Of a stretch of DNA of 64,000 nt, positions 3,827-30,330 are shown piece after piece. The translations under genes were made by a program, and so were the position numbers. Source of the DNA: Mobula hypostoma (taxonomy: Eukaryota); assembly GCF_963921235.1 (NCBI RefSeq), contig NC_086104.1, forward strand, positions 115,072,001 through 115,136,000. The letters are read 5' to 3'. The notes beneath the pieces were generated by a model. It worked only from the letters and a program-made list of their open reading frames with translations. It had not been told where the DNA came from and made no database searches. How positions within the stretch are numbered: position 1 is the stretch's first letter; the number at the start of each line of letters is the position of its first letter.

Positions 3827-3872
3827 ATGGGGACTTTCTGGTGCGCTATTTTCTTCATCCTTATTTGGAACA
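3827..3872 (+). CDS. Siglec-like gene exon 1 (signal peptide)
   Basis: ATG GGG ACT TTC TGG TGC GCT ATT TTC TTC ATC CTT ATT TGG AAC A|gtaact gives MGTFWCAIFFILIWN, 46 nt, phase 1. It splices in frame to the phase-1 V exon to give ...IWNTAVSEEW. It is the only hydrophobic phase-1 leader I found between the upstream paralogue and the V exon. Confidence 0.62.
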
Positions 3873-4069
3873 GTAACTGTCCATTTGTTGAAAAGCTGTG
3901 AGAGTTTTTTTTGTCACAGGCCAGTTCTATCTGACCAGAAACAGATCACAGATGGTTAAAGATGATTATATACTGGGAGATTCAATCATTCTTGTCGGTC
4001 AAACTGTTGCCTGCATCTTTGGCTGTCAAAGATCTCCCATGGCACCACGCATTCGAAAAGATAAGAGAT

Positions 4070-4295
4070 TAGTGATTAGATTGATTTGTCACGTGTACAT
4101 CGAAACATCAAAACCAGCAGTGAAATGCATCTGAAGATTATGCTGGGGAGGATGGCTGCCCACAAATGTCACCGCACATCTGGCACCAACATAGCATGCC
4201 TGCAACTTACTCGTTCCAACCCGTATGTCTTCGCAATGTAGGAGGAAATGAGAGCACACAGGAAACCCACGCAGTCACGGGGAGAAAGTACACAC
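4070..4295 (-). mobile_element. V-SINE/HE1-like SINE fragment
   Basis: The minus strand contains ttctccccgtgactgcgtgggtttcc, the characteristic V-SINE core. Confidence 0.6.
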
Positions 4296-4609
4296 AGTCA
4301 GGTTTATAATGGAGTTACATTCTGTGCTGCCTTACAATGCAGTGGACAAAGACCCTTCTAAACTCAGAAGAGTTTCTCCTAGGACAGACTTTCTGCTTTG
4401 TCCTCAACCCACCTGCTGTTTACCTAACTGAGTCATTTATGGACTATTGTTCATTCATTGTTTATGGACTAACTTTGCATCATCATTTACTAAGGAATTG
4501 TCATCAGGATGTAAATTTCAAATGAAGGTTTGTGGTCTCAGCAAAGGTTTAGGCCATTGAATGGAATTGGAGGGATAGGCAGTGGCACAGGAGGCAAAGG
4601 AAATGGTTT

Positions 4610-5384
4610 AGGGGCCAGAGAGGGGTTTACAGAGATAGGGAGGGGTGTATGAAGCAGCAGGGGGTTACAGAGATAGGGTAGGGTGTAGAGGCCAGTGGGT
4701 GTTACAGAGAAGGGAATGGTGTAGGAGGCAGAGACAGTTACAGAGAGGGAGAGGTGTAGGAGGCAGAGGGGGTAACAGGGATAGGAAGTGGTGTAGATAC
4801 CAGAGGGGGTTGCAGAGAGGGAGGGTGTTGGAGACAGAGATAGGGATGGGTGTAGAGACCAGAGGGGTTTACAGAGAAGGAAATGGTGTAGGGCTGGGTA
4901 GGTTACATAGGTAGGGAGGGATGTAGGAGGCAGAGGAGCTTACAGAGCTAGATAGGCGTGAGATACTAGAGGTGGTTAGAGAGAGAGGGAAGGGTGTAGG
5001 AGGCAGAGCGGTATTACAGAGTTAAGGAGAGATTTAGGACGCAGTGGGGATTACAGAGACAGGAAGATGTGTAGGGAACAGAGAGGGTTACATAGATAGG
5101 GAGAGGTGTAGGGGAGTCAGAGGGGGTTATAGAGATAGGGAGAGGTTTGTGAGACAGAAGGAGTTACAGAGACAGAGAGGGGTGTAGATACCAGAGGGGA
5201 TTACAGAAGTATTGGGGTGTGCAGGCCAGCGGGGCTTACAGAGAAGGGAATGGTGTAGGGGCTGAGGGGGTTACAGAGATAGGGAGAGTTGTAGGAGGCA
5301 GAGAGGGTTACAGAGATAGGGAGGGGTGTAGATTCTAGAGAGAGTTACATAATTAGAGAGAGGTTTGGAAGGCACAGAGGGTTA
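4610..5384. repeat. Degenerate G/A-rich minisatellite, ~35-38 bp unit
   Basis: Recurrent ggggttacagagatagggaggggtgtaggaggcaga; ttacag recurs at 4627, 4665, 4702 and 4738. Confidence 0.8.
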
Positions 5385-8300
5385 CAGTGTTGTGGAAAGT
5401 ACATGTGAGAGTGTGCATGTACACAATACGTGTGAGAGTGTGCATGCAGACAGTATGTGTGACAGTGTGCTTGCGGACAGTACGTGTCAGAGTGTGCAAG
5501 TGGACTCTACGTGTGACGGTGCATTTGGACAGTATGTCTGACAGTGTGCTTGTGAACAGTACGTGTGACAGTGTGCTTGTGGACAGTATGTGTCAGAGTG
5601 TGCAAGTGGACTCAACGTGTGACAGGGTGCATGTGGACAGTAGGTCTGACAGTGTGCTTGTGGACAGTACGTGTGAGAGTGTGCATGTGGACAGTACGTG
5701 TGACGGTGTGCTTGTGGACAGTACGTGTGAGAGTGTGCATGTGGACAGTACGTGTGACGGTGCATTTGGACAGTATGTCTGACAGTGTGCATGTGGACAG
5801 TACGTGTGAGAGTGTGCATGTGGACAGTACGTGTGACGGTGCATTTGGACAGTATGTCTGACAGTGTGCATGCAGACAGTATGTGTGAGAATGTGCATGT
5901 GGACAGTAGGTCTGACAGTGTGCATGTGGACAGTACGTGTGACAGTGTGCATGTGCACAGTACGTGTGACAGCGTGCATGTGGACAGTACGTGTGACAAT
6001 GTGCATGTGGACAGTACGTGTGACACTGCACGTGGACAGTACGTCTGAGAATGTGCATGTGAACAGTACGTGTGACAGCGTGCATGTGGACAGTATGTGT
6101 GACAGTGTGCATGTGGACAGTAGGTTTGACAGTGTGCTTATGAACAGTACGTGTGACAGTGGGAATGTGGACAGTACGTATAACAGTGTGCATGTGGACA
6201 GTATGTCTGAAAGTGTGCTTGTAGACAGTACGTGTGACAGTGTGCATGCGGACAGTACATGTGACAGTGTACATGCGGACAGTACATATGAGAGTGTGCC
6301 TGTGGACAGTATGTGTGACAGTGTGCATGTGGACAGTCGGTTTGCACTGTGCTTGTGGACAGTATGTGTGAGAGTGTACAAGTGGACAATACGTGTGAGA
6401 GTGTGCATGTGGACAGTACATATAATAGTGTGCATGTGGACAGTACGTGTGACAGTATGCATGCGGACAGTACGTGTGACAGTGTACATGTGGACAGTAG
6501 GTTTGACAGTGTGCTTATGAACAGTACGTGTGACAGTGGGAATGTGGACAGTATGTATAACAGTGTGCATGTGGACAGTATGTCTGAAAGTGTGCTTGTA
6601 GACAGTACGTGTGACAGTGTGCATGCGGACAGTACGTGTGACAGTGTACATGCGGACAGTACGTGTGACAGTATGCATGCGGACAGTACGTGTGACAGTG
6701 TACATGTGGACAGTAGGTTTGACAGTGTGCTTATGAACAGTACGTGTGACAGTGGGAATGTGGACAGTATGTATAACAGTGTGCATGTGGACAGTATGTC
6801 TGAAAGTGTGCTTGTAGACAGTACGTGTGACAGTGTGCATGCGGACAGTACGTGTGACAGTATGCATGCGGACAGTACGTGTGACAGTGTACATGCGGAC
6901 AGTACATATGAGAGTGTGCCTGTGGACAGTATGTGTGACAGTGTGCATGTGGACAGTCGGTTTGCACTGTGCTTGTGGACAGTACGTGTGAGAGTGTACA
7001 AGTGGAAAGCACATGTAACACTGCATGTGGACAGTATATGTGAAATTGTGCATGTGGACAGCACATGTGAGAGTGTGCCTGTGGACAATACGTGTGAGAA
7101 TGTGCAAGTGGACACCACGTGTGACAGTGTACATGCGGACAGTACGTGTGAGAATGTGCATGAGGACACTACGTGTGACAGCGTGCATGTGGACAGTATG
7201 TGTGACAGTGTGCCTGTAGATATTAGGTGTGAGAGTGTGCAAATGGACACTGCGTATGACAGTGTGATGTGGACAGTACATGTGACAATGCACGTGGACA
7301 GTATGCCTGAGAGTGTGCATGTGGACAGTACATATAATAGTGTGCATGTGGGCAATAAGTGTGACAGTGTACATGTGGACAGTACGTGTGACAGTGTGCA
7401 TGTGGACAGTATGTGTGAGAGTGTACAAGTGGACAATACGTGTGACAGTGTGCATGTGGACAGTATGTGTGAGAGTGTACAAGTGGACAATACGTGTGAG
7501 AGTGTGCATGTGGACAGTACATATAATAGTGTGCATGTGGACAGTACGTGTGACACTGTGCTTATGGGCAGTACGTGTGAGAGTGTTCAAGTGGACAGTA
7601 GATGTAACACTGTGCTTATGGACAGTACGTGTGAGAGTGTGCATGTGCACAGTACGTGTGACAGCGTGCATGTGGACAGTACGTGTGACAGTGTGCATGT
7701 GGACAGTACGTGTGACACTGCACGTGGACAGTACGTCTGAGAATGTGCATGTGAACAGTACGTGTGACAGCGTGCATGTGGACAGTATGTGTGACAGTGT
7801 GCATGTGGACAGTAGGTTTGACAGTGTGCTTATGAACAGTACGTGTGACAGTGGGAATGTGGACAGTACGTATAACAGTGTGCATGTGGACAGTATGTCT
7901 GAAAGTGTGCTTGTAGACAGTACGTGTGACAGTGTGCATGCGGACAGTACATGTGACAGTATGCATGCGGACAGTACGTGTGACAGTGTACATGCGGACA
8001 GTACATATGAGAGTGTGCCTGTGGACAGTATGTGTGACAGTGTGCATGTGGACAGTCGGTTTGCACTGTGCTTGTGGACAGTATGTGTGAGAGTGTACAA
8101 GTGGACAATACGTGTGAGAGTGTGCATGTGGACAGTACATATAATAGTGTGCATGTGGACAGTACGTGTGACAGTGTGCATGTGGACAGTACGTGTGACA
8201 CTGCACGTGGACATTATGTCTGAGAGTGTGCATGTGAACAGTACATATAATAGTGTGCATGTGGACAGTATGTGTGACAGTGTGCCTGTGGGCAGTATGT

Positions 8301-8396
8301 GTGAGAGTGGGCAAGTGGACACTAGATGTGACACTGTGCATGTCTGAGAGTATGCATGTGGACAGTATGATAACTGTGTGCATGTAGATAATACGT
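5385..8396. repeat. 27-bp minisatellite, left arm (~110 units)
   Basis: Consensus gtgcatgtggacagtacgtgtgacagt; 9-residue periodicity in all long ORFs. Confidence 0.97.
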
Positions 8397-9752
8397 TGTT
8401 ACGTACCACGTAACTGGGTTGCCAAACCAGCAGAAATAGATCACTCAGTTGGATTCTGGATTACTAGAACTAAGAAAGTTTTATTAAAGAAACAAGCAAC
8501 ACAGTAATCGAAAGGATAATAAATGCAACAGTTCAGCAATGATAAACACACATGTGCACAGAATTAAGATAACAGCATCAATCAAGCTTTATCGTTGTCT
8601 AGGGGTAAATGACCAAATTTCAAAGTGACACAAATTTCAGTCCAATTTAGTAGTTCAGTTCGCAGTAATCGTTGCCATGGTGATGGACAAAGTTGGGGGA
8701 GAGAGAGAGAACGGGAACGACTGATCATTCAGACACAGCTTCACTCACAGACCGGCGATATTTGCTCACAAGCAGTTTTTGGGCAGGTCCTTGGTGATGT
8801 CACCTGAGGTCACCGACTGTGACCCCTCCTCCAGATGCGGTCGATCCTCTGCAGTGAACCCGGCACCCAGGCAAGGGCGGACACACACCGGGTTCCCGCT
8901 GTTACGTACCCCGTAACTGGGTTGCCAAACCAGCAGAAATGGATCACTCAGTTGGAGTCTGGAGTACTAGAACTAAGAAAGTTTTATTAAAGAAACAAGC
9001 AACACAGTAATCGAAAGGATAATAAATGCAACAGTTCAGCGATGATAAACACACATGTGCACAGAATTAAGATAACAGCATCAATCAAGCTCTATCGTTG
9101 TCTAGGGGTAAATGACCAAATTTCAAAATGACTCAAAGATCAGTCCAGTTCAGTTCGCAGTAATCGTTGCCATGGCGATGGACAACGTGGGGGAAGAGAG
9201 AGATAGAACAGGAACAACTGATCATTCAGACACAGCTTCACTCACAGACCGGCGAGATGGCTCACAAGCAACTTTTGGGCGGGTCCTTGGTGATGTCACC
9301 TGAGGTCACCGACTGTGACCCCTCCTCCAGATGTGGTCGATCCTCTGCAGCGAACCCGGCACCCAGGCAAGGGCGGACACACACCGGTTTCCCGCTGATC
9401 GTACCTTTCCACCCTGGTCGTTGTCTGATACTTCTCACCCACTCGTGAGAGGCACACCGCTTCCAGGGTCTCGTTACCTCGGGTGGCGTGTGTCCCTGTC
9501 TTAGCGAACCTGTCCCTTTTTATCCCCCTGCTGGGGTATCGCCTGTCCATCACTTCAAACAGTTCAGGGTTCAAAGGGGGAGCCGCTCCAGACAGCTCTC
9601 TCTCCCACGTCCCTTCATTACACATCTCCAGACGCTGCTCCATTATTCCTTATCTCTCCTTCCCCTGAGGGCAGGTGGCAGACCAACTGCTGATGTCACT
9701 GATGCTAACCCAGGCCAGCAAACATCTTAATTTTATGTGTATTCTCGTAAAA
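8397..9752 (-). mobile_element. 3' LTR of a Gmr1-like LTR retrotransposon (8900-9752) with a 503-bp partial tandem duplicate (8397-8899)
   Basis: Both copies start tgttacgtacc (8397, 8900). The LTR ends cgtaaaa at 9752 (degenerate inverted terminus). An adjacent polypurine tract aaaggggggaag lies on the minus strand at 9753-9764. Confidence 0.8.
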
Positions 9753-11850
9753 CTTCCCCCCTTTAAGGATTTTTACCGGGAGGTAAAAATTACAAACATG
9801 AATACATTATTTGATACATACACAATATACATCTTTATCAGCTATTTGGCTAACACAGCGAGTTTGAAGCTGTCAACACCTTGACAGACAGTCATCACCT
9901 TGACAGACAGTCATCACCTTTTCTGTTCCTTTTACACGTGTTATTAATAATCCCTTAGACCAGGCTCCAACTCAGCAAACTTCATAGTGGCCAAAAACAC
10001 TGATGAATTGCGACCAATGTAACCTCTCATTTGGTTTTGTCCCGGACCACAATAACAAGGGTCGTCCCATTCCGACTCAGTTTTCTCTCGCAAGGGCTTA
10101 GTAGGAGGGGGACGGGTATTGACCGCAGAGTTATTGCAAAACTTCCTGCAGTACCCCACCATCTCCAAGAGCCCTCTGAGGGCCCTCTTGTCTGTCGGGG
10201 TTGGGAGGTCAGCGATAGCCTGCACTGTAGCTTGCATCGCTGCCAGCTGCCCCTGTGTCACCACAATTCCCAGGTAAGTGACCCCCGTGTGGCCGAATTC
10301 ATTTTTTTTCAAGGTTCACTATCAATCTGGCTTCAGACAGCCGTATTAAATTGCCAATACACACCTCTGTGTTCATCAGCCCTTTAGTCACTGAATTACT
10401 CATTATATATCGTGTTGTTTACTAGGCTGACCTATTGTAACAGACATCACCCAACGTCCCAGTTCTTTGCATTTCCTCGGGACAATCAAACACACGGGTG
10501 CGAGTCGTTTAATTACTCCTTCTAAAGATTCGCTTTGTTCGGGGATTAAGGGAGAGACCTTATCAGTAGACCTGACCAAAACAATAGCCTTCTCCCATCT
10601 GACCGATCCCATCCTAATCTTTTCAAAATGGTTTTTTCCTCTTATCAGGGGGCCCCTAGCTTCATTGATTTCCACGCTAACACCGACCAGGTTTGTTAGC
10701 ATATCAAAAGCCGGTGACCGTCTCAGTTCGCGTCGGTCATGATCAATAACATTTTTCCCCCTGGGCAGCCGGTAAATCTCTTTCATGATTCCACCAACTG
10801 TTTCCTCCAGCACCGCAAGATGTCCACCGGGGGGTACCTCGTGGGCCATGTTAAAAACCTCATCCCCATAACTCTTTTGCACCACCCCCCATTCCTCATC
10901 TGCGGGTACTGTACTTGATTTCCCTTTCTTCCTTAGCACTTCCTCATCCGCACAATAGCCTACTAGTTCCCTTGTCAAGGCTGTGTCAGAGAGAGCGGTC
11001 TCTGCAAAAACCATCAGCCCCTCGTCTCGCTCCTGCGTCTGCACAAATTATTTCCCGGCTACTGCTACGTCCGTCCCAGCTCCCTCACTACCACTTGTCT
11101 CACTACCCTCTTTCTTTCCATTTTCTACCCCCTTCTCGTACAAGGTTGGCAAAAACTGTTTCAGCTAAATTCACTATCGCGGGCGGGGCCTCAATGCTGG
11201 CAGGCTGACCTGTCAATCTCACGACTGGGAACACGATTCCCCCGGCGATGTCATTACCGAGCAAGACTTCCACGCCTTTCATCGGTAATTCGGGCCTCAC
11301 CCCGATCGTGACTAGTCCAGAGACCAGGTTGCTTTGTAAGTGTATCTGGTGCAAAGGGACTGACTCTGTCCCTTCCCCAACACCTTTGACCTCTACCTCC
11401 CCAGTCTGGGTCTCTGAGCTAAACTCTAATACACTCTTCAGTATTAGTGACTGACACGCTCCCGTGTCTCTCCAGATCCGCACTGGAACTGGTTTTAACC
11501 CCTCCTTCACTGACACCAGTCCGGCCGAGATAAACCTGGACTTTTTCAGACCTGTCCTTCCCTAGCGGTTCGCTTAACAGCTCGATACAGCCATTCAAAA
11601 TTTCCGCTTTTCCTTTCCCCGTCTCCTTCCTTGGGGCAAAGCACCTGGACGCAAAGTGTCCGGCTTTCCCACAATGATAACAGACGACCCCAGGAGACTT
11701 CCTACCAGACTGCTCCCGGTCTACCTTATCCTTTTCACTAGTCCCCGGCTTACTTTCTGACTTTTCCGGCGGACTCTCCCCGCCGTCCTGACTACCCTTC
11801 TGGTAGCCTTTACTCGGGGCAAACTTCATTTTATGCGTCAACGCATACTC
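9753..11850 (-). mobile_element. Internal region of a deleted Gmr1-like Ty3/Gypsy element (gag CCHC knuckle, protease, partial integrase, partial RT)
   Basis: Minus-strand motifs in order: CYHCGKAGHFASRC, IWRDTGACQS (aspartic protease), MAHEVPPGGHL (integrase HHCC part), EFGHTGVTYLGIVV (RT C-terminal part). Frameshifted and 5'-truncated. Confidence 0.8.
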
Positions 11851-14800
11851 AGTAGGTTTGACAGTGTGTTTGTGGACAGTACGGGTGAGAGTGTACAAAT
11901 GGAAAGTACATGTAACACTCTGCATGTGGACAGTACATGTGATTGTGTGCATGTGGACAGTACGTGTGACAGTGTGCATGTGGACAGTACGTGTGAGAGT
12001 GTACAAGTGGAAAGTACATGTAACACTCTGCATGTGGACAGTACATGTGACTGTGTGCATGTGGACAGTACGTGTGAGAATGTGCATGTGGACAGTACGT
12101 GTGACAGTGTGCATGTGGACAGTACGTGTGACAGAGTGCATGTGGACAGTACATGTGAGAGTGTGCATGTGGACAGTACGTGTGACAGTGTGCATGTGGA
12201 CAGTACGTGTGACAGAGTGCATGTGGACAGTATGTGTGAGAGTGTGCAAGTGGTCACTGTGTATGACAGTGTGCATGTGGACAGTATGTGTGAGAGTGTA
12301 CAAATGGAAAGTACATGTAACACTCTGCATGTGGACAGTACATGTGACTGTGTGCATGTGGACAGTACGTGTGAGAGTGTGCATGTGGACAGTACGTGTG
12401 ACAGAGTGCATGTGGACAGTATGTGTGAGAGTGTGCATGTGGACAGTACGTGTGACAGAGTGCAAATGGACATTACGAGTGAGAGTTTGCCTGTGGACAG
12501 TATGTGTGAGAGTGTGCATGTGAACAGTATGTTTGACAGTGTACATGTGGACAGTACGTGTGAGAGTGTGCATGTGCACAGTACGTTTGCAGTGTGCCTG
12601 TGGACAGTACGTGTAGGAGTGTGCAAATCGACACTGAGTATGACTGTGTGCATGTGGACAGTATGTGTGACAGTGTGCATGTGTACAGTACGTGTGACAG
12701 TGTGCATGTGCACAGTACGTTTGACAGTGTGCATGTGGACAGTATGTGTGACAGTGTGCCAGTGGACAGTACGTGTGGCAGTGTGCATGTGTACAGTACG
12801 TGTGACAGTGTGCATGTGGACAGTACGTGTGGCAGTGTGCATGTGGACAGTATGTGTGACAGTGTGCATGTGGACCATACGTGTGACAATGCACGTGGAC
12901 AGTATGTCTGACTGTGTGCATGCGGACAGTACGTGTGACACTGCACGTGGACAGTATGTCTGAGAGTGTGCATGAGGACAATACGTGTAACAGTGTGCCT
13001 GTGGACAGTACGTGTGAGAGTGTCCATGTGGACAGTACGTATGACAGTGTCCATGTGGACAGTACATGTGACAGTGTGCAAATGGACAAGACGTGTGAGA
13101 GTGTGCATGTGGACAGTACATATAACAGTGTGCATGTGAACAGTATGTTTGACAGTGTACATGTGGACAGTACGTGTGAGAGTGTGCATGTGCACAGTAC
13201 GTTTGCAGTGTGCCTGTGGACAGTACGTGTGGGAGTGTGCAAATCGACACTGAGTATGACTGTGTGCAGTGGACAGTAGGTTTGACAGTGTGCATGTGGA
13301 CAGTACGTGTGACAGTGTGCATGTGGACAGTACATGTGACTGTGTGCATGTGGACAGTACGTGTGACAGTGTGCATGTGGACAGTACGTGTGAGAGTGTG
13401 CATGTGGACAGTACGTGTGACAGTGTGCATGTGGACAGTACGTGTGAGAGTGTGCATGTGGACAGTACGTGTGACAGTGTGCATGTGGACAGTATGTGTG
13501 AGAGTGTGCATGTGGACAGTAGGTTTGACAGTGTGCATGTGGACAGTACGTGTGACAGTGTGCATGTGGACAGTACGTGTGACAGTGTGCATGTGGACAG
13601 TATGTGTGAGAGTGTGCATGTGGACAGTATGTGTGACAGTGTGCATGTGGACAGTATGTGTGAGAGTGTGCATGTGGACAGTATGTGTGAGAGTGTACAT
13701 GTGAACAGTACGTGTGACAGTGTGCATGTGAACAGTACGTGTGACAGTGTGCATGTGGACAGTATGTGTGAGAGTGTGCATGTGGACAGTACGTGTGACA
13801 GTGTGCATGTGGACAGTATGTGTGAGAGTGTGCATGTGGACAGTATGTGTGACAGTGTGCATGTGGACAGTATGTGTGAGAGTGTGCATGTGGACAGTAT
13901 GTGTGACAGTGTGCATGTGAACAGTACGTGTGACAGTGTGCATGTGGACAGTATGTGTGAGAGTGTGCATGTGGACAGTATGTGTGAGAGTGTACAAATG
14001 GAAAGTACATGTAACACTTTGCATGTGGACAGTACATGTGACTGTGTGCATGTGGACAGTACGTGTGAGAGTGTGCATGTGGACAGTATGTGTGACAGTG
14101 TGCATGCGGACAGTATGTCTGAAAGTGTGCATGTGGACAGTATGTGTGAGAGTGTGCATGTGGACAGTACGTGTGACAGAGTGCATGTGGACAGTATGTG
14201 TGAGAGTGTGCATGTGGACAGTACGTGTGACAGAGTGCATGTGGACAGTATGTGTGAGAGTGTGCATGTGGACAGTACGTGTGACAGAGTGCATGTGGAC
14301 AGTATGTGTGAGAGTGTGCATGTGGACAGTATGTGTGAGAGTGCGCAAGTGGACATTACGAGTGAGAGTTTGCCTGTGAACAGTATGTTTGACAATGTAC
14401 ATGTGGACAGTACGTGTGAGAGTGTGCATGTGCACAGTACGTTTGCAGTGTGCCTGTGGACAGTACGTGTAGGAGTGTGCAAATCGACACTGAGTATGAC
14501 TGTGTGCATGTGAACAGTATGTGTGACAGTGTGCATGTGAACAGTATGTGTGACAGTGTGCATGTGGACAGTAGGTTTGACAGTGTGCATGTGAACAGTA
14601 CGTGTGACAGTGTGCATGTGGACAGTACATGTGGCAGTGTGCATGTGGACAGTATGTGTGACAGTGTGCATGTGGACCATACGTGTGACAATGCATGTGG
14701 ACAGTATGTGTGGCAGTGTGCATGTGGACAGTATGTGTGACAGTGTGCATGTGGACCATACGTGTGACAATGCATGTGGACAGTATGTGTGGCAGTGTGC

Positions 14801-17800: not shown

Positions 17801-20800
17801 TATGTGTGAGAGTGTACAAATGGAAAGTACATGTAACACTTTGCATGTGGACAGTACATGTGACTGTGTGCATGTGGACAGTACGTGTGAGAGTGTGCAT
17901 GTGGACAGTATGTGTGAGAGTGTGCATGTGGACAGTACGTGTGACAGTGTGCATGTGGACAGTACGTGTGAGAGTGTGCATGTGGACAGTACGTGTGAGA
18001 GTGTGCATGTGGACAGTACGTGTGACAGAGTGCATGTGGACAGTATGTGTGAGAGTGTGCATGTGGACAGTACGTGTGACAGAGTGCAAATGGACATTAC
18101 GAGTGAGAGTTTGCCTGTGGACAGTATGTGTGAGAGTGTGCATGTGAACAGTATGTTTGACAGTGTACATGTGGACAGTACGTGTGAGAGTGTGCATGTG
18201 CACAGTACGTTTGCAGTGTGCCTGTGGACAGTACGTGTAGGAGTGTGCAAATCGACACTGAGTATGACTGTGGGCATGTGGACAGTATGTGTGACAGTGT
18301 GCATGTGTACAGTACGTGTGACAGTGTGCATGTGCACAGTACGTTTGACAGTGTGCATGTGGACAGTATGTGTGACAGTGTGCCAGTGGACAGTACGTGT
18401 GGCAGTGTGCATGTGTACAGTACGTGTGACAGTGTGCATGTGGACAGTACGTGTGGCAGTGTGCATGTGGACAGTATGTGTGACAGTGTGCATGTGGACC
18501 ATACGTGTGACAATGCACGTGGACAGTATGTCTGACTGTGTGCATGCGGACAGTACGTGTGACACTGCACGTGGACAGTATGTCTGAGAGTGTGCATGAG
18601 GACAATACGTGTAACAGTGTGCCTGTGGACAGTACGTGTGAGAGTGTCCATGTGGACAGTACGTATGACAGTGTCCATGTGGACAGTACATGTGACAGTG
18701 TGCAAATGGACAAGACGTGTGAGAGTGTGCATGTGGACAGTACATATAACAGTGTGCATGTGAACAGTATGTTTGACAGTGTACATGTGGACAGTACGTG
18801 TGAGAGTGTGCATGTGCACAGTACGTTTGCAGTGTGCCTGTGGACAGTACGTGTGGGAGTGTGCAAATCGACACTGAGTATGACTGTGTGCAGTGGACAG
18901 TAGGTTTGACAGTGTGCATGTGGACAGTACGTGTGACAGTGTGCATGTGGACAGTACATGTGACTGTGTGCATGTGGACAGTACGTGTGACAGTGTGCAT
19001 GTGGACAGTACGTGTGAGAGTGTGCATGTGGACAGTACGTGTGAGAGTGTGCATGTGGACAGTACGTGTGAGAGTGTGCATGTGGACAGTACGTGTGACA
19101 GTGTGCATGTGGACAGTATGTGTGAGAGTGTGCATGTGGACAGTAGGTTTGACAGTGTGCATGTGGACAGTACGTGTGACAGTGTGCATGTGGACAGTAC
19201 GTGTGACAGTGTGCATGTGGACAGTATGTGTGAGAGTGTGCATGTGGACAGTATGTGTGACAGTGTGCATGTGGACAGTATGTGTGAGAGTGTGCATGTG
19301 GACAGTATGTGTGAGAGTGTACATGTGAACAGTACGTGTGACAGTGTGCATGTGAACAGTACGTGTGACAGTGTGCATGTGGACAGTATGTGTGAGAGTG
19401 TGCATGTGGACAGTACGTGTGACAGTGTGCATGTGGACAGTATGTGTGAGAGTGTGCATGTGGACAGTATGTGTGACAGTGTGCATGTGGACAGTATGTG
19501 TGAGAGTGTGCATGTGGACAGTATGTGTGACAGTGTGCATGTGAACAGTACGTGTGACAGTGTGCATGTGGACAGTATGTGTGAGAGTGTGCATGTGGAC
19601 AGTATGTGTGAGAGTGTACAAATGGAAAGTACATGTAACACTTTGCATGTGGACAGTACATGTGACTGTGTGCATGTGGACAGTACGTGTGAGAGTGTGC
19701 ATGTGGACAGTATGTGTGACAGTGTGCATGCGGACAGTATGTCTGAAAGTGTGCATGCGGACAGTACGTGTGAGAGTGTGCATGTGGACAGTATGTGTGA
19801 CAGTGTGCATGCGGACAGTATGTCTGAAAGTGTGCATGTGGACAGTATGTGTGAGAGTGTGCATGTGGACAGTACGTGTGACAGAGTGCATGTGGACAGT
19901 ATGTGTGAGAGTGTGCATGTGGACAGTACGTGTGACAGAGTGCATGTGGACAGTATGTGTGAGAGTGTGCATGTGGACAGTACGTGTGACAGAGTGCATG
20001 TGGACAGTATGTGTGAGAGTGTGCATGTGGACAGTATGTGTGAGAGTGCGCAAGTGGACATTACGAGTGAGAGTTTGCCTGTGAACAGTATGTTTGACAA
20101 TGTACATGTGGACAGTACGTGTGAGAGTGTGCATGTGCACAGTACGTTTGCAGTGTGCCTGTGGACAGTACGTGTAGGAGTGTGCAAATCGACACTGAGT
20201 ATGACTGTGTGCATGTGAACAGTATGTGTGACAGTGTGCATGTGAACAGTATGTGTGACAGTGTGCATGTGGACAGTAGGTTTGACAGTGTGCATGTGAA
20301 CAGTACGTGTGACAGTGTGCATGTGGACAGTACATGTGGCAGTGTGCATGTGGACAGTATGTGTGACAGTGTGCATGTGGACCATACGTGTGACAATGCA
20401 TGTGGACAGTATGTGTGGCAGTGTGCATGTGGACAGTATGTGTGACAGTGTGCATGTGGACCATACGTGTGACAATGCATGTGGACAGTATGTGTGGCAG
20501 TGTGCATGTGGACAGTATGTCTGACTGTGTGCATGCGGACAGTACGTGTGACACTGCACGTGGACAGTATGTCTGAGAGTGTGCATGAGGACAATACGTG
20601 TAACAGTGTGCCTGTGGACAGTACGTGTGAGAGTGTCCATGTGGACAGTACATGTGACAGTGTGCAAATGGACAAGACGTGTGAGAGTGTGCATGTGGAC
20701 AGTACATATAACAGTGTGCATGTGAACAGTATGTTTGACAGTGTACATGTGGACAGTACGTGTGAGAGTGTGCATGTGCACAGTACGTTTGCAGTGTGCC

Positions 20801-23800
20801 TGTGGACAGTACGTGTGGGAGTGTGCAAATCGACACTGAGTATGACTGTGTGCATGTGGACAGTACGTGTGACAGAGTGCATGTGGACAGTATGTGTGAC
20901 AGTGTGCATGTGGACAGTACATGTGACTGTGTGCATGTGGACAGTACGTGTGAGAGTGTGCATGTGGACAGTACGTGTGACAGAGTGCATGTGGACAGTA
21001 CGTGTGACAGTGTGCATGTGGACAGTACATGTGACTGTGTGCATGTGGACAGTACGTGTGAGAGTGTGCATGTGGACAGTACGTGTGACAGTGTGCATGT
21101 GGACAGTACATGTGACTGTGTGCATGTGGACAGTACGTGTGAGAGTGTGCATGTGGACAGTACGTGTGAGAGTGTGCATGTGGACAGTACGTGTGACAGA
21201 GTGCATGTGGACAGTAAGTGTGACAGTGTGCATGTGGACAGTACGTGTGACAGTGTGCATGTGGACAGTATGTCTGAGAGTGTGCATGTGGACAGTACAT
21301 GTGAGAGTGTGCATGTGGACAGTACGTGTGAGAGTGTGCATGTGGACAGTACGTGTGACAGCGTGCATGTGGACAGTATGTGTGACAGTGTGCATGCGGA
21401 CAGTATGTCTGAGAGTGTGCATGTGGACAGTATGTCTGAGAGTGTGCATGTGGACAGTACGTGTGAGAGTGTGCCTGTGGACACTACATGTGAGAATGTG
21501 CAAATGAACACTGCGTATGACAGCGTACATGCCAACAGTACGTGTGACAGTGTGCATGCCAACAGTACGTGTGACAGTGTGCATGTGGACAGTACGTGTA
21601 ATAGTTTGCATGTGGACAGTATGTGTGACAGTGTGCCTGTGGACACTACATGTGAGAATGTGCAAATGAACACTGCGTATGACAGCGTACATGTGGACGG
21701 TACGTGTGACACTGCACGTGGACAGTATGTCTGAGAGTGTGCATGTGGACAGTACGTGTGACAGTGTGCATGTGGACAGTACGTGTGAGAGTGTGCCTGT
21801 GGACAGTACGTGTGACAGTGTGCCTGTGGACAGTACATGTGACTGTGTGCCTGTGGACAGTACGTGTGAGAGTGTGCATGTGGACAGTACGTGTGACAGT
21901 GTGCATGTGGACAGTATGTGTGAGAGTGTGCATGTGGACAGTATGTGTGAGAGTGTACATGTGAACAGTACGTGTGACAGTGTGCATGTGGACAGTACGT
22001 GTGACAGTGTGCATGTGGACAGTACGTGTGAGAGTGTACATGTGAACAGTACGTGTGACAGTGTGCATGTGGACAGTACGTGTGACAGTGTGCCTGTGGA
22101 CAGTACGTGTGAGAGTGTGCATGTGGACAGTACGTGTGAGAGTGTGCATGTGGACAGTACGTGTGAGAGTGTGCATGTGGACAGTATGTGTGACAGTGTG
22201 CATGTGAACAGTACGTGTGACAGTGTGCATGTGGACAGTATGTGTGAGAGTGTGCATGTGGACAGTATGTGTGACAGTGTGCATGTGAACAGTACGTGTG
22301 ACAGTGTGCATGTGGACAGTATGTGTGAGAGTGTACAAATGGAAAGTACATGTAACACTTTGCATGTGGACAGTACATGTGACTGTGTGCATGTGGACAG
22401 TACGTGTGAGAGTGTGCATGTGGACAGTATGTGTGACAGTGTGCATGCGGACAGTACGTGTGACAGAGTGCATGTGGACAGTATGTGTGAGAGTGTGCAT
22501 GTGGACAGTACGTGTGACAGTGTGCATGCCAACAGTACGTGTGACAGTGTGCATGTGGACAGTACGTGTAATAGTTTGCATGTGGACAGTATGTGTGACA
22601 GTGTGCATGTGGACAGTATGTGTGAGAGTGTACAAATGGAAAGTACATGTAACACTTTGCATGTGGACAGTACATGTGACTGTGTGCATGTGGACAGTAC
22701 GTGTGAGAGTGTGCATGTGGACAGTATGTGTGACAGTGTGCATGCGGACAGTATGTCTGAAAGTGTGCATGTGGACAGTATGTGTGAGAGTGTGCATGTG
22801 GACAGTACGTGTGACAGAGTGCATGTGGACAGTATGTGTGAGAGTGTGCATGTGGACAGTACGTGTGACAGTGTGCATGCCAACAGTACGTGTGACAGTG
22901 TGCATGTGGACAGTACGTGTAATAGTTTGCATGTGGACAGTATGTGTGACAGTGTGCCTGTGGACACTACATGTGAGAATGTGCATATGAACACTGCGTA
23001 TGACAGCGTACATGTGGACGGTACGTGTGACACTGCACGTGGACAGTATGTCTGAGAGTGTGCATGTGGACAGTATATATAATAGTGTGCATGTGGACAA
23101 TATGTGTGAGAGTGTGCATGTGGACAGTATATATAATAGTGTGCATGTGGACAATATGTGTGACAGTGTGCATGTGGACAGTACGTGTGACAGTGTGCCT
23201 GTGGACAGTACGTGTGACAGTGTGCCTGTGGACAGTACATGTGACTGTGTGCCTGTGGACAGTACGTGTGAGAGTGTGCATGTGGACAGTACGTGTGACA
23301 GTGTGCATGTGGACAGTATGTGTGAGAGTGTGCATGTGGACAGTATGTGTGAGAGTGTACATGTGAACAGTACGTGTGACAGTGTGCATGTGGACAGTAT
23401 GTGTGAGAGTGTGCATGTGGACAGTATGTGTGACAGTGTGCATGTGAACAGTACGTGTGACAGTGTGCATGTGGACAGTATGTGTGAGAGTGTGCATGTG
23501 AACAGTACGTGTGACAGTGTGCATGTGGACAGTACGTGTGAGAGTGTACATGTGGACAGTATGTGTGAGAGTGTGCATGTGGACAGTATGTGTGAGAGTG
23601 TACAAATGGAAAGTACATGTAACACTTTGCATGTGGACAGTACATGTGACTGTGTGCATGTGGACAGTACGTGTGAGAGTGTGCATGTGGACAGTATGTG
23701 TGACAGTGTGCATGCGGACAGTATGTCTGAAAGTGTGCATGTGGACAGTATGTGTGAGAGTGTGCATGTGGACAGTACGTGTGACAGAGTGCATGTGGAC

Positions 23801-24656
23801 AGTATGTGTGAGAGTGTGCATGTGGACAGTACGTGTGACAGTGTGCATGCCAACAGTACGTGTGACAGTGTGCATGTGGACAGTACGTGTAATAGTTTGC
23901 TTGTGGACAGTATGTGTGACAGTGTGCCTGTGGACACTACATGTGAGAATGTGCAAATGAACACTGCGTATGACAGCGTACATGTGGACGGTACGTGTGA
24001 CACTGCACGTGGACAGTATGTCTGAGAGTGTGCATGTGGACAGTATATATAATAGTGTGCATGTGGACAGTACGTGTGACAGTGTGCATGTTGACAGTAC
24101 GTGTGACACTGTGTATGTGGACAGTATGTGTGACAGTGTGCCTGTGGACAGTACGTGTGAGAGTGTGCATGTGGACAGTACGTGTGACAGTGTGCATGTG
24201 GACAGTACGTGTGACAGTGTGCCTGTGGACAGTACGTGTGAGAGTGTGCCTGTGGACAGTATGTCTGAGAGTGTGCCTGTGGACAGTACGTGTGACAGTG
24301 TGCCTGTGGACAGTACATGTGACAGTGTGCCTGTGGACAGTACGTGTGACAGTGTGCATGTGGACAGTACGTGTGACAGTGTGCCTGTGGACAGTATGTC
24401 TGAGAGTGTGCATGTGGACAGTATGTGTGAGAGTGTGCATGTGGACAGTACGTGTGAGAGTGTACAAATGGAAAGTACATGTAACACTCTGCATGTGGAC
24501 AGTACATGTGACTGTGTGCATGTGGACAGTATGTGTGACAGTGTGCATGTGGACAGTACGTGTGACAGTGTGCATGTGGACAGTATGTGTGAGAGTGTGC
24601 AAGTGGAGAGTACGTGTGACACTGTGTATGTGGACAGTACGTGTGACAGTGTGCAT
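11851..24656. repeat. 27-bp minisatellite, right arm (~475 units) with higher-order repeats
   Basis: Same consensus as the left arm. Rare variant markers recur at offsets of 5624-5786 bp. Confidence 0.97.
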
Positions 24657-25422
24657 CTGCTCTGTATCTGCTCTTTCCGCTCATCAATATCTCCTTTAAG
24701 GGTCTCTCATTCCTACAATTCTCTACACCTCCAAGATCTGCGTTAATTGCAGTGTTGGATATTGTTCTCTGTGCACCCTAAGCAGCAGTATGTATGAGAA
24801 GCAAAGCCATGCTTCTGGTTGCAGTCCCTTGACAACTCCACTCTTCGCTTCACTATGGTCGAAGCTTACAACCTCACTGAGACATTGTTGTAATCAGGAA
24901 TTTTGTTGTCTGTTTTATATTCCATAAATCCTTCCATAAAACATTCACCTCTGAAATTAGTATTGCTACCCTTTGTAAATGCTGAGTAGTGTTTGAACTG
25001 AGTGTCACTCTGAGACCACTGAATCTTCTGCTTCTTATTGACAAATTTGAAACCACTGGGCACCTTTGATCCCAGTCCAAAGTTGATTGGTTGGTGAGGT
25101 CCTCCTGATGCCATTATCATGGCCTTTTCCAACCCCTACTGCCACAGGGTGCCATGGAGAGACCCTCTAGAGCTCTGGATTTGCCCATCAGGGAAATGTG
25201 TTGGATGGGTCATGATGTTATTGCCAGAGAACAAGTCATGGAACATACATATAAAGAGCAAGGTCAGCGTATTTCCACAATTGTCTTTTGCTGTGATATC
25301 CAATCTCTGTATGCAACACAAACGATGCCCGGATTCCCATCCCTGCATGATTGAATCAAGAGATTCCAGAACCTACAAAGTCTTGTCTTTCCAATGTCAA
25401 ATATTCTTCCATCTCTCCCCAG

Positions 25423-25788
25423 CTGCAGTGTCGGAAGAGTGGAGAGCTGACACTCCACGAGATGTGACGGCGCAGAGGGGTTTGTGTGCCCGGATTCCAT
25501 GCCACTACAGTTATCCATCACAGTTGAACAATAAACCACGGACAGCAGTCTGGATGAATGATGAAAAATACAATGTTAAGTCAATCGCCTTTCACTCTGA
25601 GGATCACAGAAGTCAGGCAGGGAGGTTTCACTATCGGACCTGGCTGTCTGGTAACTTGAAAGACGGTGATTGTTCACTGGTTATAAACGATATCATGTTT
25701 GGAGATGAAGGTCCTTATCATTTCAGAATTGAATTTCCCAACCAGTATCATTACAGTTTCTACCCTGTAACACAGCTCTACGTTTCTG
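25423..25788 (+). CDS. Siglec-like gene exon 2: V-set Ig domain
   Basis: Boundaries ctctccccag|ct and tct g|gtaggt; 366 nt, phase 1-1. Reads EEWRA..GLCARIPCHY..W..GDCSLVI..EGPYHFRIE..YSF. It has the Siglec-type CxxxxC plus E-strand Cys, no F-strand Cys, and a conserved F-strand Arg (FRIE). Confidence 0.9.
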
Positions 25789-26177: not shown

Positions 26178-26471
26178 ATTTCACAGATAAACCCTCGATA
26201 TTTGCTGATGAAGTGGTTGAAGGAAAGCCCAAGGACATAATCTGCGCCTTCAACACCACATGTGATAAGGCAATACCCACGTTAACATGGGCCCTTCCCA
26301 CCAACGTATCAGCATTAAAGTCAGACAGTGTAACTCAGCAGGGTGACACTCTGATATACACTTCTGTTCTGACCCTGACCCCAACACTTAAACACCACGG
26401 ACAGAATCTCACCTGCAGAGTCAGATATCCAGCCACTTCATCGGAGCAGACCATCACACTAAACGTACAGA
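26178..26471 (+). CDS. Siglec-like gene exon 3: C2-set Ig domain
   Basis: Boundaries ctattag|at and cag a|gtaagt; 294 nt, phase 1-1. Reads DFTDKPSI..IICAFNTTCDK..LTW..QNLTCRV, with the extra Cys expected for the Siglec inter-domain disulfide. Confidence 0.9.
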
Positions 26472-26577: not shown

Positions 26578-26905
26578 AGCAGCCCAAACCTAAGGAAGAA
26601 TGTGCTGAATGTGGAGATGGTCCACAAAACATTTCCAGTGATGAAAGGCTTAATGTATGAGGAGTATCTGGGCCTGTACTTGCTGGAGTTTAGAAGAATG
26701 AGAGTGGATCTCATTGAAACCTATGAAATACTGAAAGACCTGGATAGAGTGGACATGGTGAGGATGTTTCCAGTGGTGGAAGAGTCTGGCGCAGCCTCAG
26801 AATAGAAGGATGTCCCTTTCGAACAGAGATGAGGAGGAATTTCTTTAGCCAGGGTGTGGTGAATCTGTTGGATGCATTGCCATAGATAATGGAGGCCAAG
26901 TCATG
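26578..26905 (+). mobile_element. CR1 LINE ORF2 C-terminal fragment (intronic)
   Basis: PNLRK..LGLYLLEFRRMRVDLIETYEILK matches the CR1 ORF2 tail in 54659-57370. Confidence 0.75.
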
Positions 26906-26909
26906 GGGG

Positions 26910-27600: not shown

Positions 27601-27794
27601 GTAGATACACTTATGCCACCTTGGTCTCACAAAGAGGAGACAATGAAGATGGAATAGTGAAGGCCATAAATATCTGACTGGAACAAGACTGAACGCACCT
27701 CCACATCTCTCCCAACGCAGGTGCGGATACTGGAACTTACAAACTGCCCTTGACCTTAACTGCAGCTGTGGCAGTCTCTGGGCAGAATAGTTGA

Positions 27795-28050
27795 AAGCTC
27801 AAAGTAAATCTATCATTAATCTATGTATATCTTACCATAAACTACCTTAAGATTCATTTTCTTGCAGGCATTAACAATAAAAATTTACAAAAATCCGTAC
27901 CTGAACAGCCAAAGTCTGACAAACAACAAATATATCAAAGAAGACAAACTGTGGAAAAAAATAATTATGAGAACATGAATTGTAAAGAGCCATTAAAATT
28001 GAGTCTGTAGGTTGTAGTGGTGAATGAGATTATCCAAACTCATTCAGGAG
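27795..28050. repeat. Interspersed repeat fragment (family unassigned), second copy at ~44240-44600
   Basis: Shared ctcaaagt..att..ccttragattcattttcttgca..gagaacatga..gtctgtaggt segments. Confidence 0.5.
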
Positions 28051-28112
28051 CATCATACATCAAAGTTGCTGGTGAACGCAGCAGGCCAGGCAGCATCTAT
28101 AGGAAGAGGCGC

Positions 28113-28148
28113 AGTCGACGTTTCAGGCCGAGACCCTTCGTCAGGACT
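28113..28148 (-). ncRNA. Penelope-type minimal hammerhead ribozyme motif (stem II variant) in an intronic pLTR fragment
   Basis: Minus strand AGUC-CUGACGA-AGGGUCUCGGCCU-GAAAC-GUC-GACU. Confidence 0.6.
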
Positions 28149-28585
28149 AGGGTAATAACCAACCATTCCTGAATTGGTCGTGTGGGACGAAGTCTCTGTA
28201 CTTCCTGCCCAATGGTAGTAGCAATAAGAGGTTGCAGAAGGCAGTCATACTGACTTCCAGCCAGGAACATTGGCTGAAGTGAAATTACCCATGTACTAGG
28301 GAGGTTGCAACTGCACACCGCAGAATGTCACTAATGTCTGCACCAAGACAATAGTTCCGCATTTGCAATGTGCTCAAATAAATATTGAGATTAAGTATAA
28401 TTACTGGTTTCCTGTGCACTTGTATTCATCTCCCCTCAATATCCCTTGTGAGTTTTACAACCATCAGAGTGCGTTTGAGAGTATTGGGAGTTTGAGAGTG
28501 TTCTGTACTGAGCCAAGGGGGGAGCCTTAGCAGAGAACATTGTCACCAATAATTGTCTCTTCACTCTCACTTTCTACAATGGTAG

Positions 28586-28703
28586 GACAAAGGTCACAGG
28601 CAACACTAGTCATCCTATTGGCTGCTGCAGCAGGGGCTGTATTCCTGATCATCTCATTGGTTGTGATTTGCTTCATTCTCAGGACACGATGCAGAACTAG
28701 CAG
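28586..28703 (+). CDS. Siglec-like gene exon 4: transmembrane
   Basis: Boundaries tggtag|ga and agc ag|gtgggt; 118 nt, phase 1-2. Reads QRSQATLVILLAAAAGAVFLIISLVVICFILRTRCRTS, an uncharged TM followed by basic residues. Confidence 0.85.
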
Positions 28704-28859
28704 GTGGGTGTTACCATCTCCAAGACCTCCTCCTGCCCCTGCTCCTGGTGGCCTCACGGTCATCCCCAAAGCTTGCAGCGTTCAGCTGTTGGCCTTCAGA
28801 TGCCTTGGCCTTCCCTGAGCCCTGCAATTTCTTCTCTAATTTTCTTATTTTCTTTTTCT

Positions 28860-28960
28860 TTTCTTTCTCTCTCTCATTCTCTCTCTCTCTCTCTCACATA
28901 CACACACACACACACTCACTCTCTTACTCTCTATCTCTCTCTCTCATTTTTCTCTCGCTC
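28860..28960. repeat. (CT)n/(CA)n compound microsatellite
   Basis: ctctctctctctctctcacatacacacacacacacactcactctc. Confidence 0.85.
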
Positions 28961-29522
28961 TCTTTCTCTCACTTTTAAAATGTTCTACAAGCACTAAGCT
29001 TCTATTGCATTGTAGCACAATGGCTGCAGAACTGGACTTGCATGCTTCTGCGCTGTGGGCCCATAGACATAACTGTGAATCCCCATTAGCAGTTAGGAAA
29101 TTAGTTACATGTAAATAAATAAAGTAGTCACTTACAAAATCTTATTTCTTTAACATCAAACAAGGGGTTGTTGTCAATATTTCTGGGTTCATTCTGGTTA
29201 CAGAGCCACTCTGTGCTTGACTCTGAACTACATTGTCAGTTCAAGGGCAAATAGAGATTGACAATAAATACTGGTGCTGCCTGCCAAAGGCACATTCTGT
29301 AAATATCTCTTCATGTATTTACATTTCTGTGAAGCTCGTGAAAACATTTTACTGCATGAATGGTGTTGTATAAGTTCAATTTGTTGTTGAAATAAGCTAA
29401 GGCCACAAAAGAACATTGAGACTTTGGAACACTCTCTCTGTCCTTGATACTTCAAATTGGACACAGGAATTTCCCTGCCACCATGAATATTTTTGTAACT
29501 TTGCCTCATTCTCTGCTCTTAG

Positions 29523-29598
29523 ACCACCAGCAGATGCATCAGGACCTGTATCAGAGAAGAAATCAAGAGTGATTCCAATTAGAAAGAGACAGAAGAAG
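29523..29598 (+). CDS. Siglec-like gene exon 5: cytoplasmic
   Basis: Boundaries ctctgctcttag|a and aag|gtgagt; 76 nt, phase 2-0. Reads (R)PPADASGPVSEKKSRVIPIRKRQKK. Confidence 0.82.
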
Positions 29599-29733
29599 GT
29601 GAGTGTTATAAATGCACCACATGTAGTTCGAAACAGTCCAGATAACATCTGTCCCGTGTGGTGACACTGAATGAACCATCACAAGGCATTATCTGTACAG
29701 CACTTTGGTCAACATGGGTTGTTTTTAAATGTG

Positions 29734-29734
<1 letters not shown>

Positions 29735-29770
<36 letters not shown>
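29735..29770. repeat. (TA)18 microsatellite
   Basis: Direct read. Confidence 0.95.
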
Positions 29771-29777
<7 letters not shown>

Positions 29778-30222
29778 TTGACTTGACTTGACTTTATTAA
29801 GCCTAAAGCAAGGCCAACGTACAGCAGCACTCCACTGCTCTAGATGCAGCTGCAGTGGCCACACATTAAGCAACCATAATCAATCCAGCACATTCTGGGA
29901 TTAACAGTCCCTCTAGCAGTGTGATGCTTTCTCAGCAGTGCCCTTCCACACAACAACAGCCCCTCAGCATTGTCCTTGGATTACATGGATTCCTTTTCAT
30001 GCTTGCGACATGGTTGGTGGGTCTTGAACATAGGCTCTGCACTCCAAGAGGCAGGCTGGTGCTTCTCATTGAGTCCAGTGTAACCAGACACTGAAATCAT
30101 ATAATCAAACCCAACCCAGACTGCCAACATCATCTGTGGGCAGAATAATTCCACTGGGGCTCAAACAAACCATATCGTGATCCTGCTAATTGTCCCTCTG
30201 TTCATCTCCATAGCTGTCACAG

Positions 30223-30330
30223 AAGAATGTGAAAAATGATTCGAAAGTCACACCAAACCATGACTATCAAGTTTATTGCATCTATGAAAACTGCCGGGTT
30301 GATGAGAACGCTATATATGCAAATATATAA
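30223..30330 (+). CDS. Siglec-like gene exon 6: terminal, tyrosine motifs
   Basis: gtcacag|AAG acceptor; reads KNVKNDSKVTPNHDYQVYCIYENCRVDENAIYANI*. Exons total 46+366+294+118+76+108 = 1008 nt, or 335 aa plus stop. Confidence 0.82.
   Translation, partial: KNVKNDSKVTPNHDYQVYCIYENCRVDENAIYANI

Follow-up and report, generated by a model that had tools for sequence, protein, structure and literature searches.

The 64,000-nucleotide stretch of the genome of the ray Mobula hypostoma analysed here (contig NC_086104.1, positions 115,072,001 to 115,136,000 of the forward strand; hereafter the window, with positions counted from its first base) contains a six-exon locus of the Siglec type, extending from 3827 to 30330. 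This locus is a real, intact-looking gene, which confirms an observation made in an earlier note on the same DNA. That note had been written from the bases alone and had named a cartilaginous fish as their probable source, which proved right. We describe the gene and its domains, the family to which it belongs, the form in which it seems to be expressed and, finally, its chromosomal surroundings.

A six-exon gene with Siglec-type domains

The coding exons are the following.

3827..3872, plus strand: predicted leader (signal-peptide) exon, 15 codons and 1 base, phase 1, donor GTAACT
25423..25788, plus strand: V-set exon, phase 1-1, with a second in-frame acceptor that would make it start at 25429; supported by Pfam, PDB and AlphaFold2
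26178..26471, plus strand: C2-set exon, phase 1-1, open, with three cysteines; skipped in every transcript seen
28586..28703, plus strand: transmembrane exon, an uncharged helix; known from translation and from RNA contig junctions
29523..29598, plus strand: cytoplasmic exon 5, basic and juxtamembrane; known from spliced RNA contigs
30214..30330, plus strand: last coding exon, with YENC and the C-terminal AIYANI, stop codon TAA at 30328-30330; known from translation and spliced contigs

All six exons lie where they had previously been placed, a GT-AG pair is found at every border and the phases are compatible throughout. The length of 335 aa given before has to be corrected, as splicing yields an open frame of 338 aa, while the alternative AG at 25427-8, which is the acceptor used in the sister species Mobula birostris, gives a product of 336 aa. 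As for the predicted leader, no other phase-1 segment running from ATG to GT in 2000-4620 is as hydrophobic (mean hydropathy 1.70), and it is also the sole signal-peptide-like, phase-1, GT-flanked ATG segment that we found either there or in 24660-25422. Its frame agrees with both acceptors of the V exon, and its use would leave a mature N-terminus EEW, matching that of the relatives.

Every motif named in the earlier note was found in the translation. The V exon has three cysteines (two in GLCARIPC and one in GDCSL) and none in strand F, as well as an N-terminal Trp and an Arg within YHFRIE; three further cysteines are present in the C2 exon, the transmembrane helix is uncharged, and the tail contains YENC and AIYANI. 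Judged from sequence, the cysteine layout fits the Siglec arrangement of a B-E pair and an extra pair linking V to C2, both disulfides being predicted ones.

That the V domain is of the Siglec type is borne out by sequence matches and by the predicted fold alike. The V exon matches Pfam V-set at 3.8e-10 and Ig_CD22 at 1.1e-8, the C2 exon matches C2-set_2 at 1.6e-7, and these matches to immunoglobulin (Ig) domain profiles are far above chance. When the V exon was compared with PDB sequences by phmmer, the best 15 matches were all Siglecs, with sialoadhesin (Siglec-1) first (1.2e-13) and Siglec-5 second (1.4e-11), followed by Siglec-10, -8, -15, MAG, Siglec-7 and CD33. An AlphaFold2 model of the V domain, built from 48 aligned V domains, reached a pLDDT (predicted local distance difference test) of 92.3, and its top 47 fold matches in PDB and top 22 in Swiss-Prot were all Siglec V domains, at a TM-score (template modelling score) of about 0.8-0.89. 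Sialoadhesin was the best structural match too (0.84-0.89). With respect to the sialic-acid-binding triad, the N-terminal Trp corresponds in the alignment to W2 of sialoadhesin and the Arg of YHFRIE to R97, and a Tyr nine residues past this Arg is found, as read from sequence, at the place of W106, the G-strand aromatic position of sialoadhesin. W6 and R101 are kept in at least 90% of the 48 aligned V domains. Among the paralogous C2 exons, 12 share 65-72% identity with the C2 exon, against 52% for that of the neighbouring gene.

A tandem family of elasmobranch Siglecs

The earlier note had ventured that the gene might represent a lineage-specific family, and this idea is supported by our searches: the family is large, tandemly expanded, and its relatives were found only in elasmobranchs. 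A six-frame search of the genome gave 13 intact V exons, with identities of 48-100%, together with 5 that are broken or partial. All of them are on contig C22, where they form two clusters at 114.81-115.19 Mb and 119.62-120.56 Mb, with more distant V exons at 120.0-120.9 Mb. The same contig carries 14 intact C2 exons of the family type, each downstream of a V exon, while a six-frame search with the tail exon matched only that exon itself. In public protein collections the family profile retrieved 114 relatives, every one of them a shark or ray protein. RefSeq already contains the family under names assigned by its pipeline (CD33-like, Siglec-5/6/7/8/10/12/13/14 or MAG-like), and the orthologue of the studied gene is annotated in M. 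birostris. Beyond the family, the nearest nameable proteins are MAG-, SMP- or CD22-like models of cow shark, gar, paddlefish and catfish, and two unnamed teleost Ig proteins are also among the nearest.

The gene falls outside the MAG, CD22 and Siglec-15 groups; for MAG and CD22, this is seen in the V-domain phylogeny that had been suggested as a check. In a quick tree of 117 rows, the elasmobranch family stood apart from MAG-like, SMP-like, CD22-like and actinopterygian proteins with an SH-aLRT (Shimodaira-Hasegawa-like approximate likelihood ratio test) value of 96, and the same separation was obtained in a more careful tree of 60 rows (98/94), in which a long-branched pair of V exons from the same genome (120.02 and 120.87 Mb) also falls inside the family. 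The studied V exon pairs with that of the M. birostris orthologue (100/99). Outside Mobula, it is closest to skate receptors with the same YxNC...IYxNV tail, namely the models of Rhinoraja longicauda (XP_078287832, P0219) and Leucoraja (P0214), which are named 'CD33-like' and 'Siglec-13', though this join is weakly supported (89/17). P0219 aligns over the full length at 53% identity and has the same succession of V, C2 and transmembrane segments, followed by a DIYANC...SIYANV tail; the skate models differ from our gene in that their distal motif, with Ser at -2, is a canonical ITIM (immunoreceptor tyrosine-based inhibitory motif). Sharks and batoids are largely separate in the V tree, and therefore much of the expansion is recent.

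Two other identities were considered and rejected. An identity with MAG or CD22 disagrees with the branch in the tree, with the presence of only two Ig exons, where MAG has five Ig domains, and with the low score of the studied V domain against mouse MAG (35 bits), as compared with 194 bits for a separate MAG-type gene (P0147) at C22:120.93 Mb. Siglec-15, after which RefSeq names the M. birostris orthologue, was rejected because the transmembrane lysine is missing and the profile score is only 57 bits; this name is an artefact of the short layout of the orthologue. The number of Ig exons likewise disagrees with an orthologue of Siglec-1, and a separate V exon whose best match is sialoadhesin was found on contig C80.

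The family has at least five classes of tails. The first, to which the studied gene belongs and which occurs in both sharks and batoids, ends with YxNC...(S)IYxN[IVM] at the C-terminus. The further classes are LLYASINF...TEYAQIRFQ, PVYANLREL...VIYSELHF, SLYQEL...DLYSEL, and short tails combined with an Arg in the transmembrane helix. The family includes both CD33-style receptors with V, C2 and an ITIM/ITSM pair (ITSM, immunoreceptor tyrosine-based switch motif) and short-tailed forms with a transmembrane Arg. The latter, represented by the shark proteins P0006, P0026, P0156, P0187, P0198, P0216 and P0222, have tails of 12-19 residues and look like, as far as sequence can tell, the activating partners of paired receptors. 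In P0030 and P0046, the sialic-acid-binding Arg is replaced by Glu or Gly. The locus is one entry to an elasmobranch family that shows hallmarks of CD33-related Siglecs, which likewise form a tandem, fast-evolving family with charged-transmembrane short-tail forms and Arg-loss members: tandem clusters, lineage-specific expansion, ITIM/ITSM-bearing as well as charged-transmembrane forms, and loss of the Arg in some members. This family-level story is more interesting than the studied locus, whose expressed form is uncertain.

Canonical Siglecs have one V domain. A multi-V layout was noticed in P0175, a RefSeq protein of M. hypostoma (701 aa, named Siglec-12) encoded at C22:114,893,264-114,925,290 and covering the loci L005, L009, L011 and L014: it has four V-set exons, a single C2, a transmembrane segment and a YENF...SIYANM tail. 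It is a gene model and possibly a merged one; similar models with 3-4 V domains occur in Hypanus, Scyliorhinus and Mustelus.

Tail motifs, expressed forms and constraint

Taking these results together, we think it probable, while far from settled, that the locus is a genuine Siglec receptor gene of the batoid branch of an elasmobranch-wide tandem family residing in a hepcidin/MAG neighbourhood, that it encodes both V and C2, and that it works by a Grb2-type mechanism. The V domain would bind sialylated glycans via its F-strand Arg. Phosphorylation by Src-family kinases would then enable the proximal pYENC to recruit Grb2-type SH2 adaptors, by analogy with CD22, whose YENV upstream of an ITIM is a known Grb2 site (Siglec-10/G also carries one; PMC6286995); in our gene, YENC likewise lies upstream of an ITIM-like C-terminal tyrosine. 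By the same analogy, the distal pYANI probably recruits such adaptors too. The two-Ig protein is what the genome could encode, while the forms expressed in the sister species consist of V, transmembrane segment and tail, with C2 left out.

A number of findings weigh against a receptor of this kind, and they concern its tail, its transcripts, its leader and its rate of change. The tail had been described as inhibitory in type, but this description is not supported: YENC (Cys at -2 and +3) and AIYANI (Ala at -2) fit neither [SIVL]xYxx[ILV] nor TxYxx[IV], and both are YxN sites, that is, Grb2-type ones. The studied gene has neither an ITIM/ITSM pair nor a charged transmembrane helix, such as are present in other members of the family. 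In several relatives the distal motif is canonical (SIYGNI, SIYENV, SIYANV), with Ser at -2 and a fitting residue at +3. As it is degenerate here, recruitment of SHP-1/2 is likely weak or lost.

The receptor had also been called a complete two-Ig one. The C2 exon is indeed intact in the DNA, but C2 is absent from the isoforms of the orthologue and from RNA contigs, and so a "complete V+C2 inhibitory receptor" is unproven. We mapped contigs of four RNA-like runs on 25300-30400. In M. hypostoma itself, one contig (run X1 record 7) joins exon 5 to exon 6 at 100% identity, yet expression is very low, with low coverage of the V exon, zero depth at the transmembrane exon, and a depth of about 0.6 at C2, confined to one bin at the 3' end of this exon. 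The sister-species contigs are about 98% identical to our sequence. One of them, of 1172 nt (run X2 record 9), joins the end of V at 25787 straight to the start of the transmembrane exon at 28585 and continues from there to the last exon; in another (run-contig X5 record 27), the transmembrane exon, exon 5 and exon 6 are spliced together. The pieces of the V exon found in RNA contigs start at 25427-25429. Words of the C2 exon were recovered from DNA runs at a fraction of 1.00 in M. hypostoma and 0.48 in the sister species, and from three same-species RNA-like runs at 0.09, 0 and 0. Two same-species contigs of low depth (X1 record 1 and X3 record 14) extend beyond the V donor by 28 bases (25789-25816) before they leave the window sequence at a point where GT is absent; polymorphism, pre-mRNA or an assembly artefact are possible reasons.

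The M. birostris gene, 29,357 bp long on record, resembles ours closely: its V domain is 88% identical, the transmembrane segment and tail are near-identical, and the tyrosine motifs are the same. However, its four RefSeq isoforms (263, 262, 229 and 217 aa) all pass from V to the transmembrane segment without C2, and none has a signal peptide or uses the predicted leader; X4, in addition, uses a cryptic donor inside V. Their first exons correspond to a sequence that the window lacks or to one of two places within it.

25154..25262, plus strand: alternative 5' exon of M. birostris isoforms X1 and X4, without a signal peptide, donor CAAG|GTCAGC
4166..4285 (end approximate), plus strand: repeat-like stretch that corresponds to the first coding exon (MSPHIW...) in isoform X2 of M. 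birostris (P0154)

The N-termini of the M. birostris proteins P0159 and P0019 match the open reading frame at the former place. At the latter, the bases that follow the last matching codon in M. hypostoma are GA and not GT, and the donor may therefore be specific to the sister species. Neither the C2 exon nor the predicted leader was seen in any transcript among the available RNA contigs and isoforms. The leader also found no homologue, as a 161-bp stretch around 3827-3872 matches only itself across the genome, and the leaders of the paralogues are not recognisable within 1.5 kb of their V exons. Finally, we found no M. hypostoma protein for the studied gene in the protein collections, where the proteins of its neighbours are present; apparently, the gene is unannotated in its own genome.

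One possible explanation of the missing C2 is that the Mobula product is a one-domain receptor of V, transmembrane segment and tail, with C2 having turned, not long ago, into a pseudo-exon that is constitutively skipped and the two-Ig model being only a genomic relic. We regard this as a serious but doubtful alternative. It agrees with the direct junction in run-contig X2 record 9, with the sequence ...VSGQRSQ... which all four isoforms of the orthologue read across this junction, with a C2 depth of zero in the sister-species RNA runs despite the exon being present in DNA of that species, and with the lack of any public protein carrying the studied C2 domain (the best match being 68% identical). 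On the other hand, the C2 frame is open, its splice sites are strong, and of the 12 positions in the C2 part of the 13-sequence alignment A1 that never vary, 11 are unchanged in this exon. Without C2, the second V cysteine, whose normal partner lies in that domain, would be left unpaired. Moreover, the RNA data from M. hypostoma itself are too sparse for a judgement, and a relative from the sawfish Pristis produces both V-only and V+C2 isoforms of one gene (P0009 and P0158, respectively). C2 skipping thus recurs in the family, and we read the skipping in Mobula as alternative splicing that dominates the sampled tissues, which leaves the two-Ig gene as the reading that we prefer.

The comparison of the two Mobula species provides a further point to be weighed. 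They differ at 17 of 223 residues, and 11 nucleotide changes are packed into the loop that precedes strand C (25519-25546). In M. birostris, this segment is identical to the corresponding patch in the fourth V domain of the paralogue P0175, and therefore it resembles a gene-conversion tract, which suggests gene conversion in a ligand-facing loop. Outside this tract there are about 10 nonsynonymous changes to 3 synonymous ones, which equals the neutral ratio; a count like this would be reached with p = 0.03 if omega (the ratio of nonsynonymous to synonymous rates) were 0.3. By contrast, the last 34 residues, including both tyrosines, are identical. Such a pattern of change is compatible with rapid evolution of an immune receptor and with relaxed constraint alike.

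If constraint were relaxed, the gene might be a decaying member of its cluster, weakly transcribed from improvised 5' exons, drifting neutrally, and having an ectodomain that is neither secreted nor inserted into the membrane. We find this unlikely. It would account for the use in the sister species of three different 5' exons, none encoding a signal peptide, for the cryptic donor of isoform X4, for the failure to find a M. hypostoma protein model, for the ratio of changes outside the conversion-like tract and for the 20-kb satellite that fills intron 1, and the five broken or partial paralogous V exons indicate that the cluster does shed members. However, the reading frame is open through all six exons in M. 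hypostoma and every splice site is canonical, the key Trp, Arg and Cys residues are intact together with both tyrosine motifs and the unchanged C-terminal residues, and the lineage is an old one, its nearest relatives being skate genes. It should also be kept in mind that fast-evolving immune receptors, too, typically show an omega close to 1, and that 5' ends predicted by Gnomon are often incomplete.

Chromosomal neighbourhood, relation to known Siglecs and the rest of the window

The only match to hepcidin (PF06446) in the 3.48-Gb genome lies at C22:115,454,327-115,454,443 on the minus strand; it is separated from the window by 0.32 Mb and from the last V exon of the first cluster by 0.26 Mb. 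The second cluster is flanked by the MAG-type gene and by LSR and FXYD matches: of three LSR-family matches in all, one is found at 123.0 Mb of C22, and of four FXYD matches, one is found at 122.1 Mb, both at a distance of 1-2 Mb from the MAG-type gene. Contig C23 carries TMEM147 and a further FXYD match, and the ETF-domain matches are on C34 and C63 and not on C22. In human, the order of genes at 19q13.12 is FXYD-LSR-USF2-HAMP-MAG-CD22, with CD22 adjoining MAG and HAMP, whereas the CD33 cluster at 19q13.4 is flanked by ETFB. From the hepcidin, MAG-type, LSR and FXYD markers near the clusters it follows that the family occupies a neighbourhood of the MAG-CD22 type, and the locus resembles, in this coarse comparison of few markers, the human HAMP-MAG-CD22 region rather than the CD33 cluster.

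This bears on the label "CD33-like" used in the earlier note, which, if understood as orthology, is not borne out. Since the trees contain no tetrapod sequences, only profile and fold scores speak to how the family relates to tetrapod Siglecs. The V+C2 profile of the family scores 134 bits against CD33, 122 against Siglec-10, 120 against Siglec-5, 109 against Siglec-8, 108 against MAG, 64 against CD22 and 57 against Siglec-15, and for the V domain alone sialoadhesin is the best match, equal to CD33. The link to the CD33-related group is thus one of similarity in sequence and not a demonstrated orthology. That the gene and its family are true orthologues of the mammalian CD33-related cluster seems improbable to us: the highest profile scores, the ITIM+ITSM tails or Arg-bearing transmembrane helices with short tails of some members, and the tandem, fast-evolving nature of the family would agree with it, but MAG follows close behind in the profile scores, sialoadhesin is no worse than CD33 on V, the markers next to the clusters are those of the hepcidin and MAG region while ETF-domain genes are on other contigs, and the split between shark and batoid members places much of the expansion late.

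Compared with individual Siglecs, the studied gene shows mixed affinities. It shares with CD33 and CD33-related Siglecs a V-set and one C2-set domain, a single transmembrane segment, a tyrosine-bearing tail, the cysteine pattern and the essential Arg; it differs from CD33 in having no canonical ITIM or ITIM-like pair but two YxN sites only, in being located in the hepcidin/MAG neighbourhood rather than beside ETFB, in transcripts that skip C2, and in a V domain that is only about 25% identical to that of human CD33. With CD22, the likeness consists in the upstream Grb2-type tyrosine described above and in location, the human gene being beside MAG and HAMP and the elasmobranch family beside hepcidin and a MAG-type gene; unlike our gene, CD22 has seven Ig domains and a divergent V, and it is absent from the top 30 fold matches. 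Sialoadhesin, the closest in the V domain, has 17 Ig domains and no signalling tail.

Fish are said to have only Siglec-1, CD22, MAG and Siglec-15 and to lack CD33-related Siglecs, in a survey that makes no mention of cartilaginous fish (PMC7226832). Our literature search found no work on expansions of shark or ray Siglecs, only a passing mention in a whale-shark genome paper. We may tentatively propose, as a possibility that is open to doubt, that elasmobranchs have a large, fast-evolving Siglec family of their own, with inhibitory, activating (transmembrane Arg) and Grb2-type tails and even multi-V ectodomains, which grew in place at an ancestral hepcidin-MAG-CD22 locus, and in which the studied gene is Grb2-coupled and its ectodomain is tuned by C2 skipping. 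If this were true, CD33-style paired Siglecs would either predate the split of cartilaginous and bony vertebrates or have arisen twice, against the published view that fish lack them. The position of the family beside hepcidin and a MAG-type gene bears also on the idea of a single ancestral region for all Siglecs, which Cao et al. are said to have proposed in 2009.

Other features of the window are as follows.

4597..24656, no strand assigned: intron 1 satellites, a 37-bp array and then a 27-bp array (Tandem Repeats Finder)
976-1052 and 1807-1918, plus strand: two tail exons of the upstream paralogue LOC134350212 (P0044), a separate gene, identical to the C-terminus of P0044

Intron 1 is 21.5 kb long because it is filled with these two arrays. 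The satellite extends over about 20 kb with a GC skew of about 0.4; the 27-bp array occupies 5391-8343 and 11850-24656 with about 110 and 476 copies (about 586 in all) and shows higher-order repetition on the kilobase scale, and a retroelement fragment with minus-strand open reading frames splits the satellite at about 8.4-11.8 kb. The tail of LOC134350212 reads DIYANC...SIYGNI, with a distal motif that is a canonical ITIM; its RefSeq isoform X2 has an N-terminal sequence derived from a retroelement and a V domain that ends before the Arg. Further M. hypostoma proteins also agree at 100% with loci of the studied genome. The window was also searched over its 64 kb for a third Ig exon, an Ig remnant or any other Siglec exon, and none was found; in this the studied gene differs from the skate model P0011, which has a third Ig domain. 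The remainder of the window consists of retroelements, and 31-64 kb are, apart from two tandem repeats, debris of the LINE/RT type (long interspersed nuclear element/reverse transcriptase). These repeats are a 39-bp minisatellite of 13 copies, in frame inside a retroelement open reading frame (36539-37059), and a 109-bp repeat of 7 copies that are 98% alike (40595-41357).

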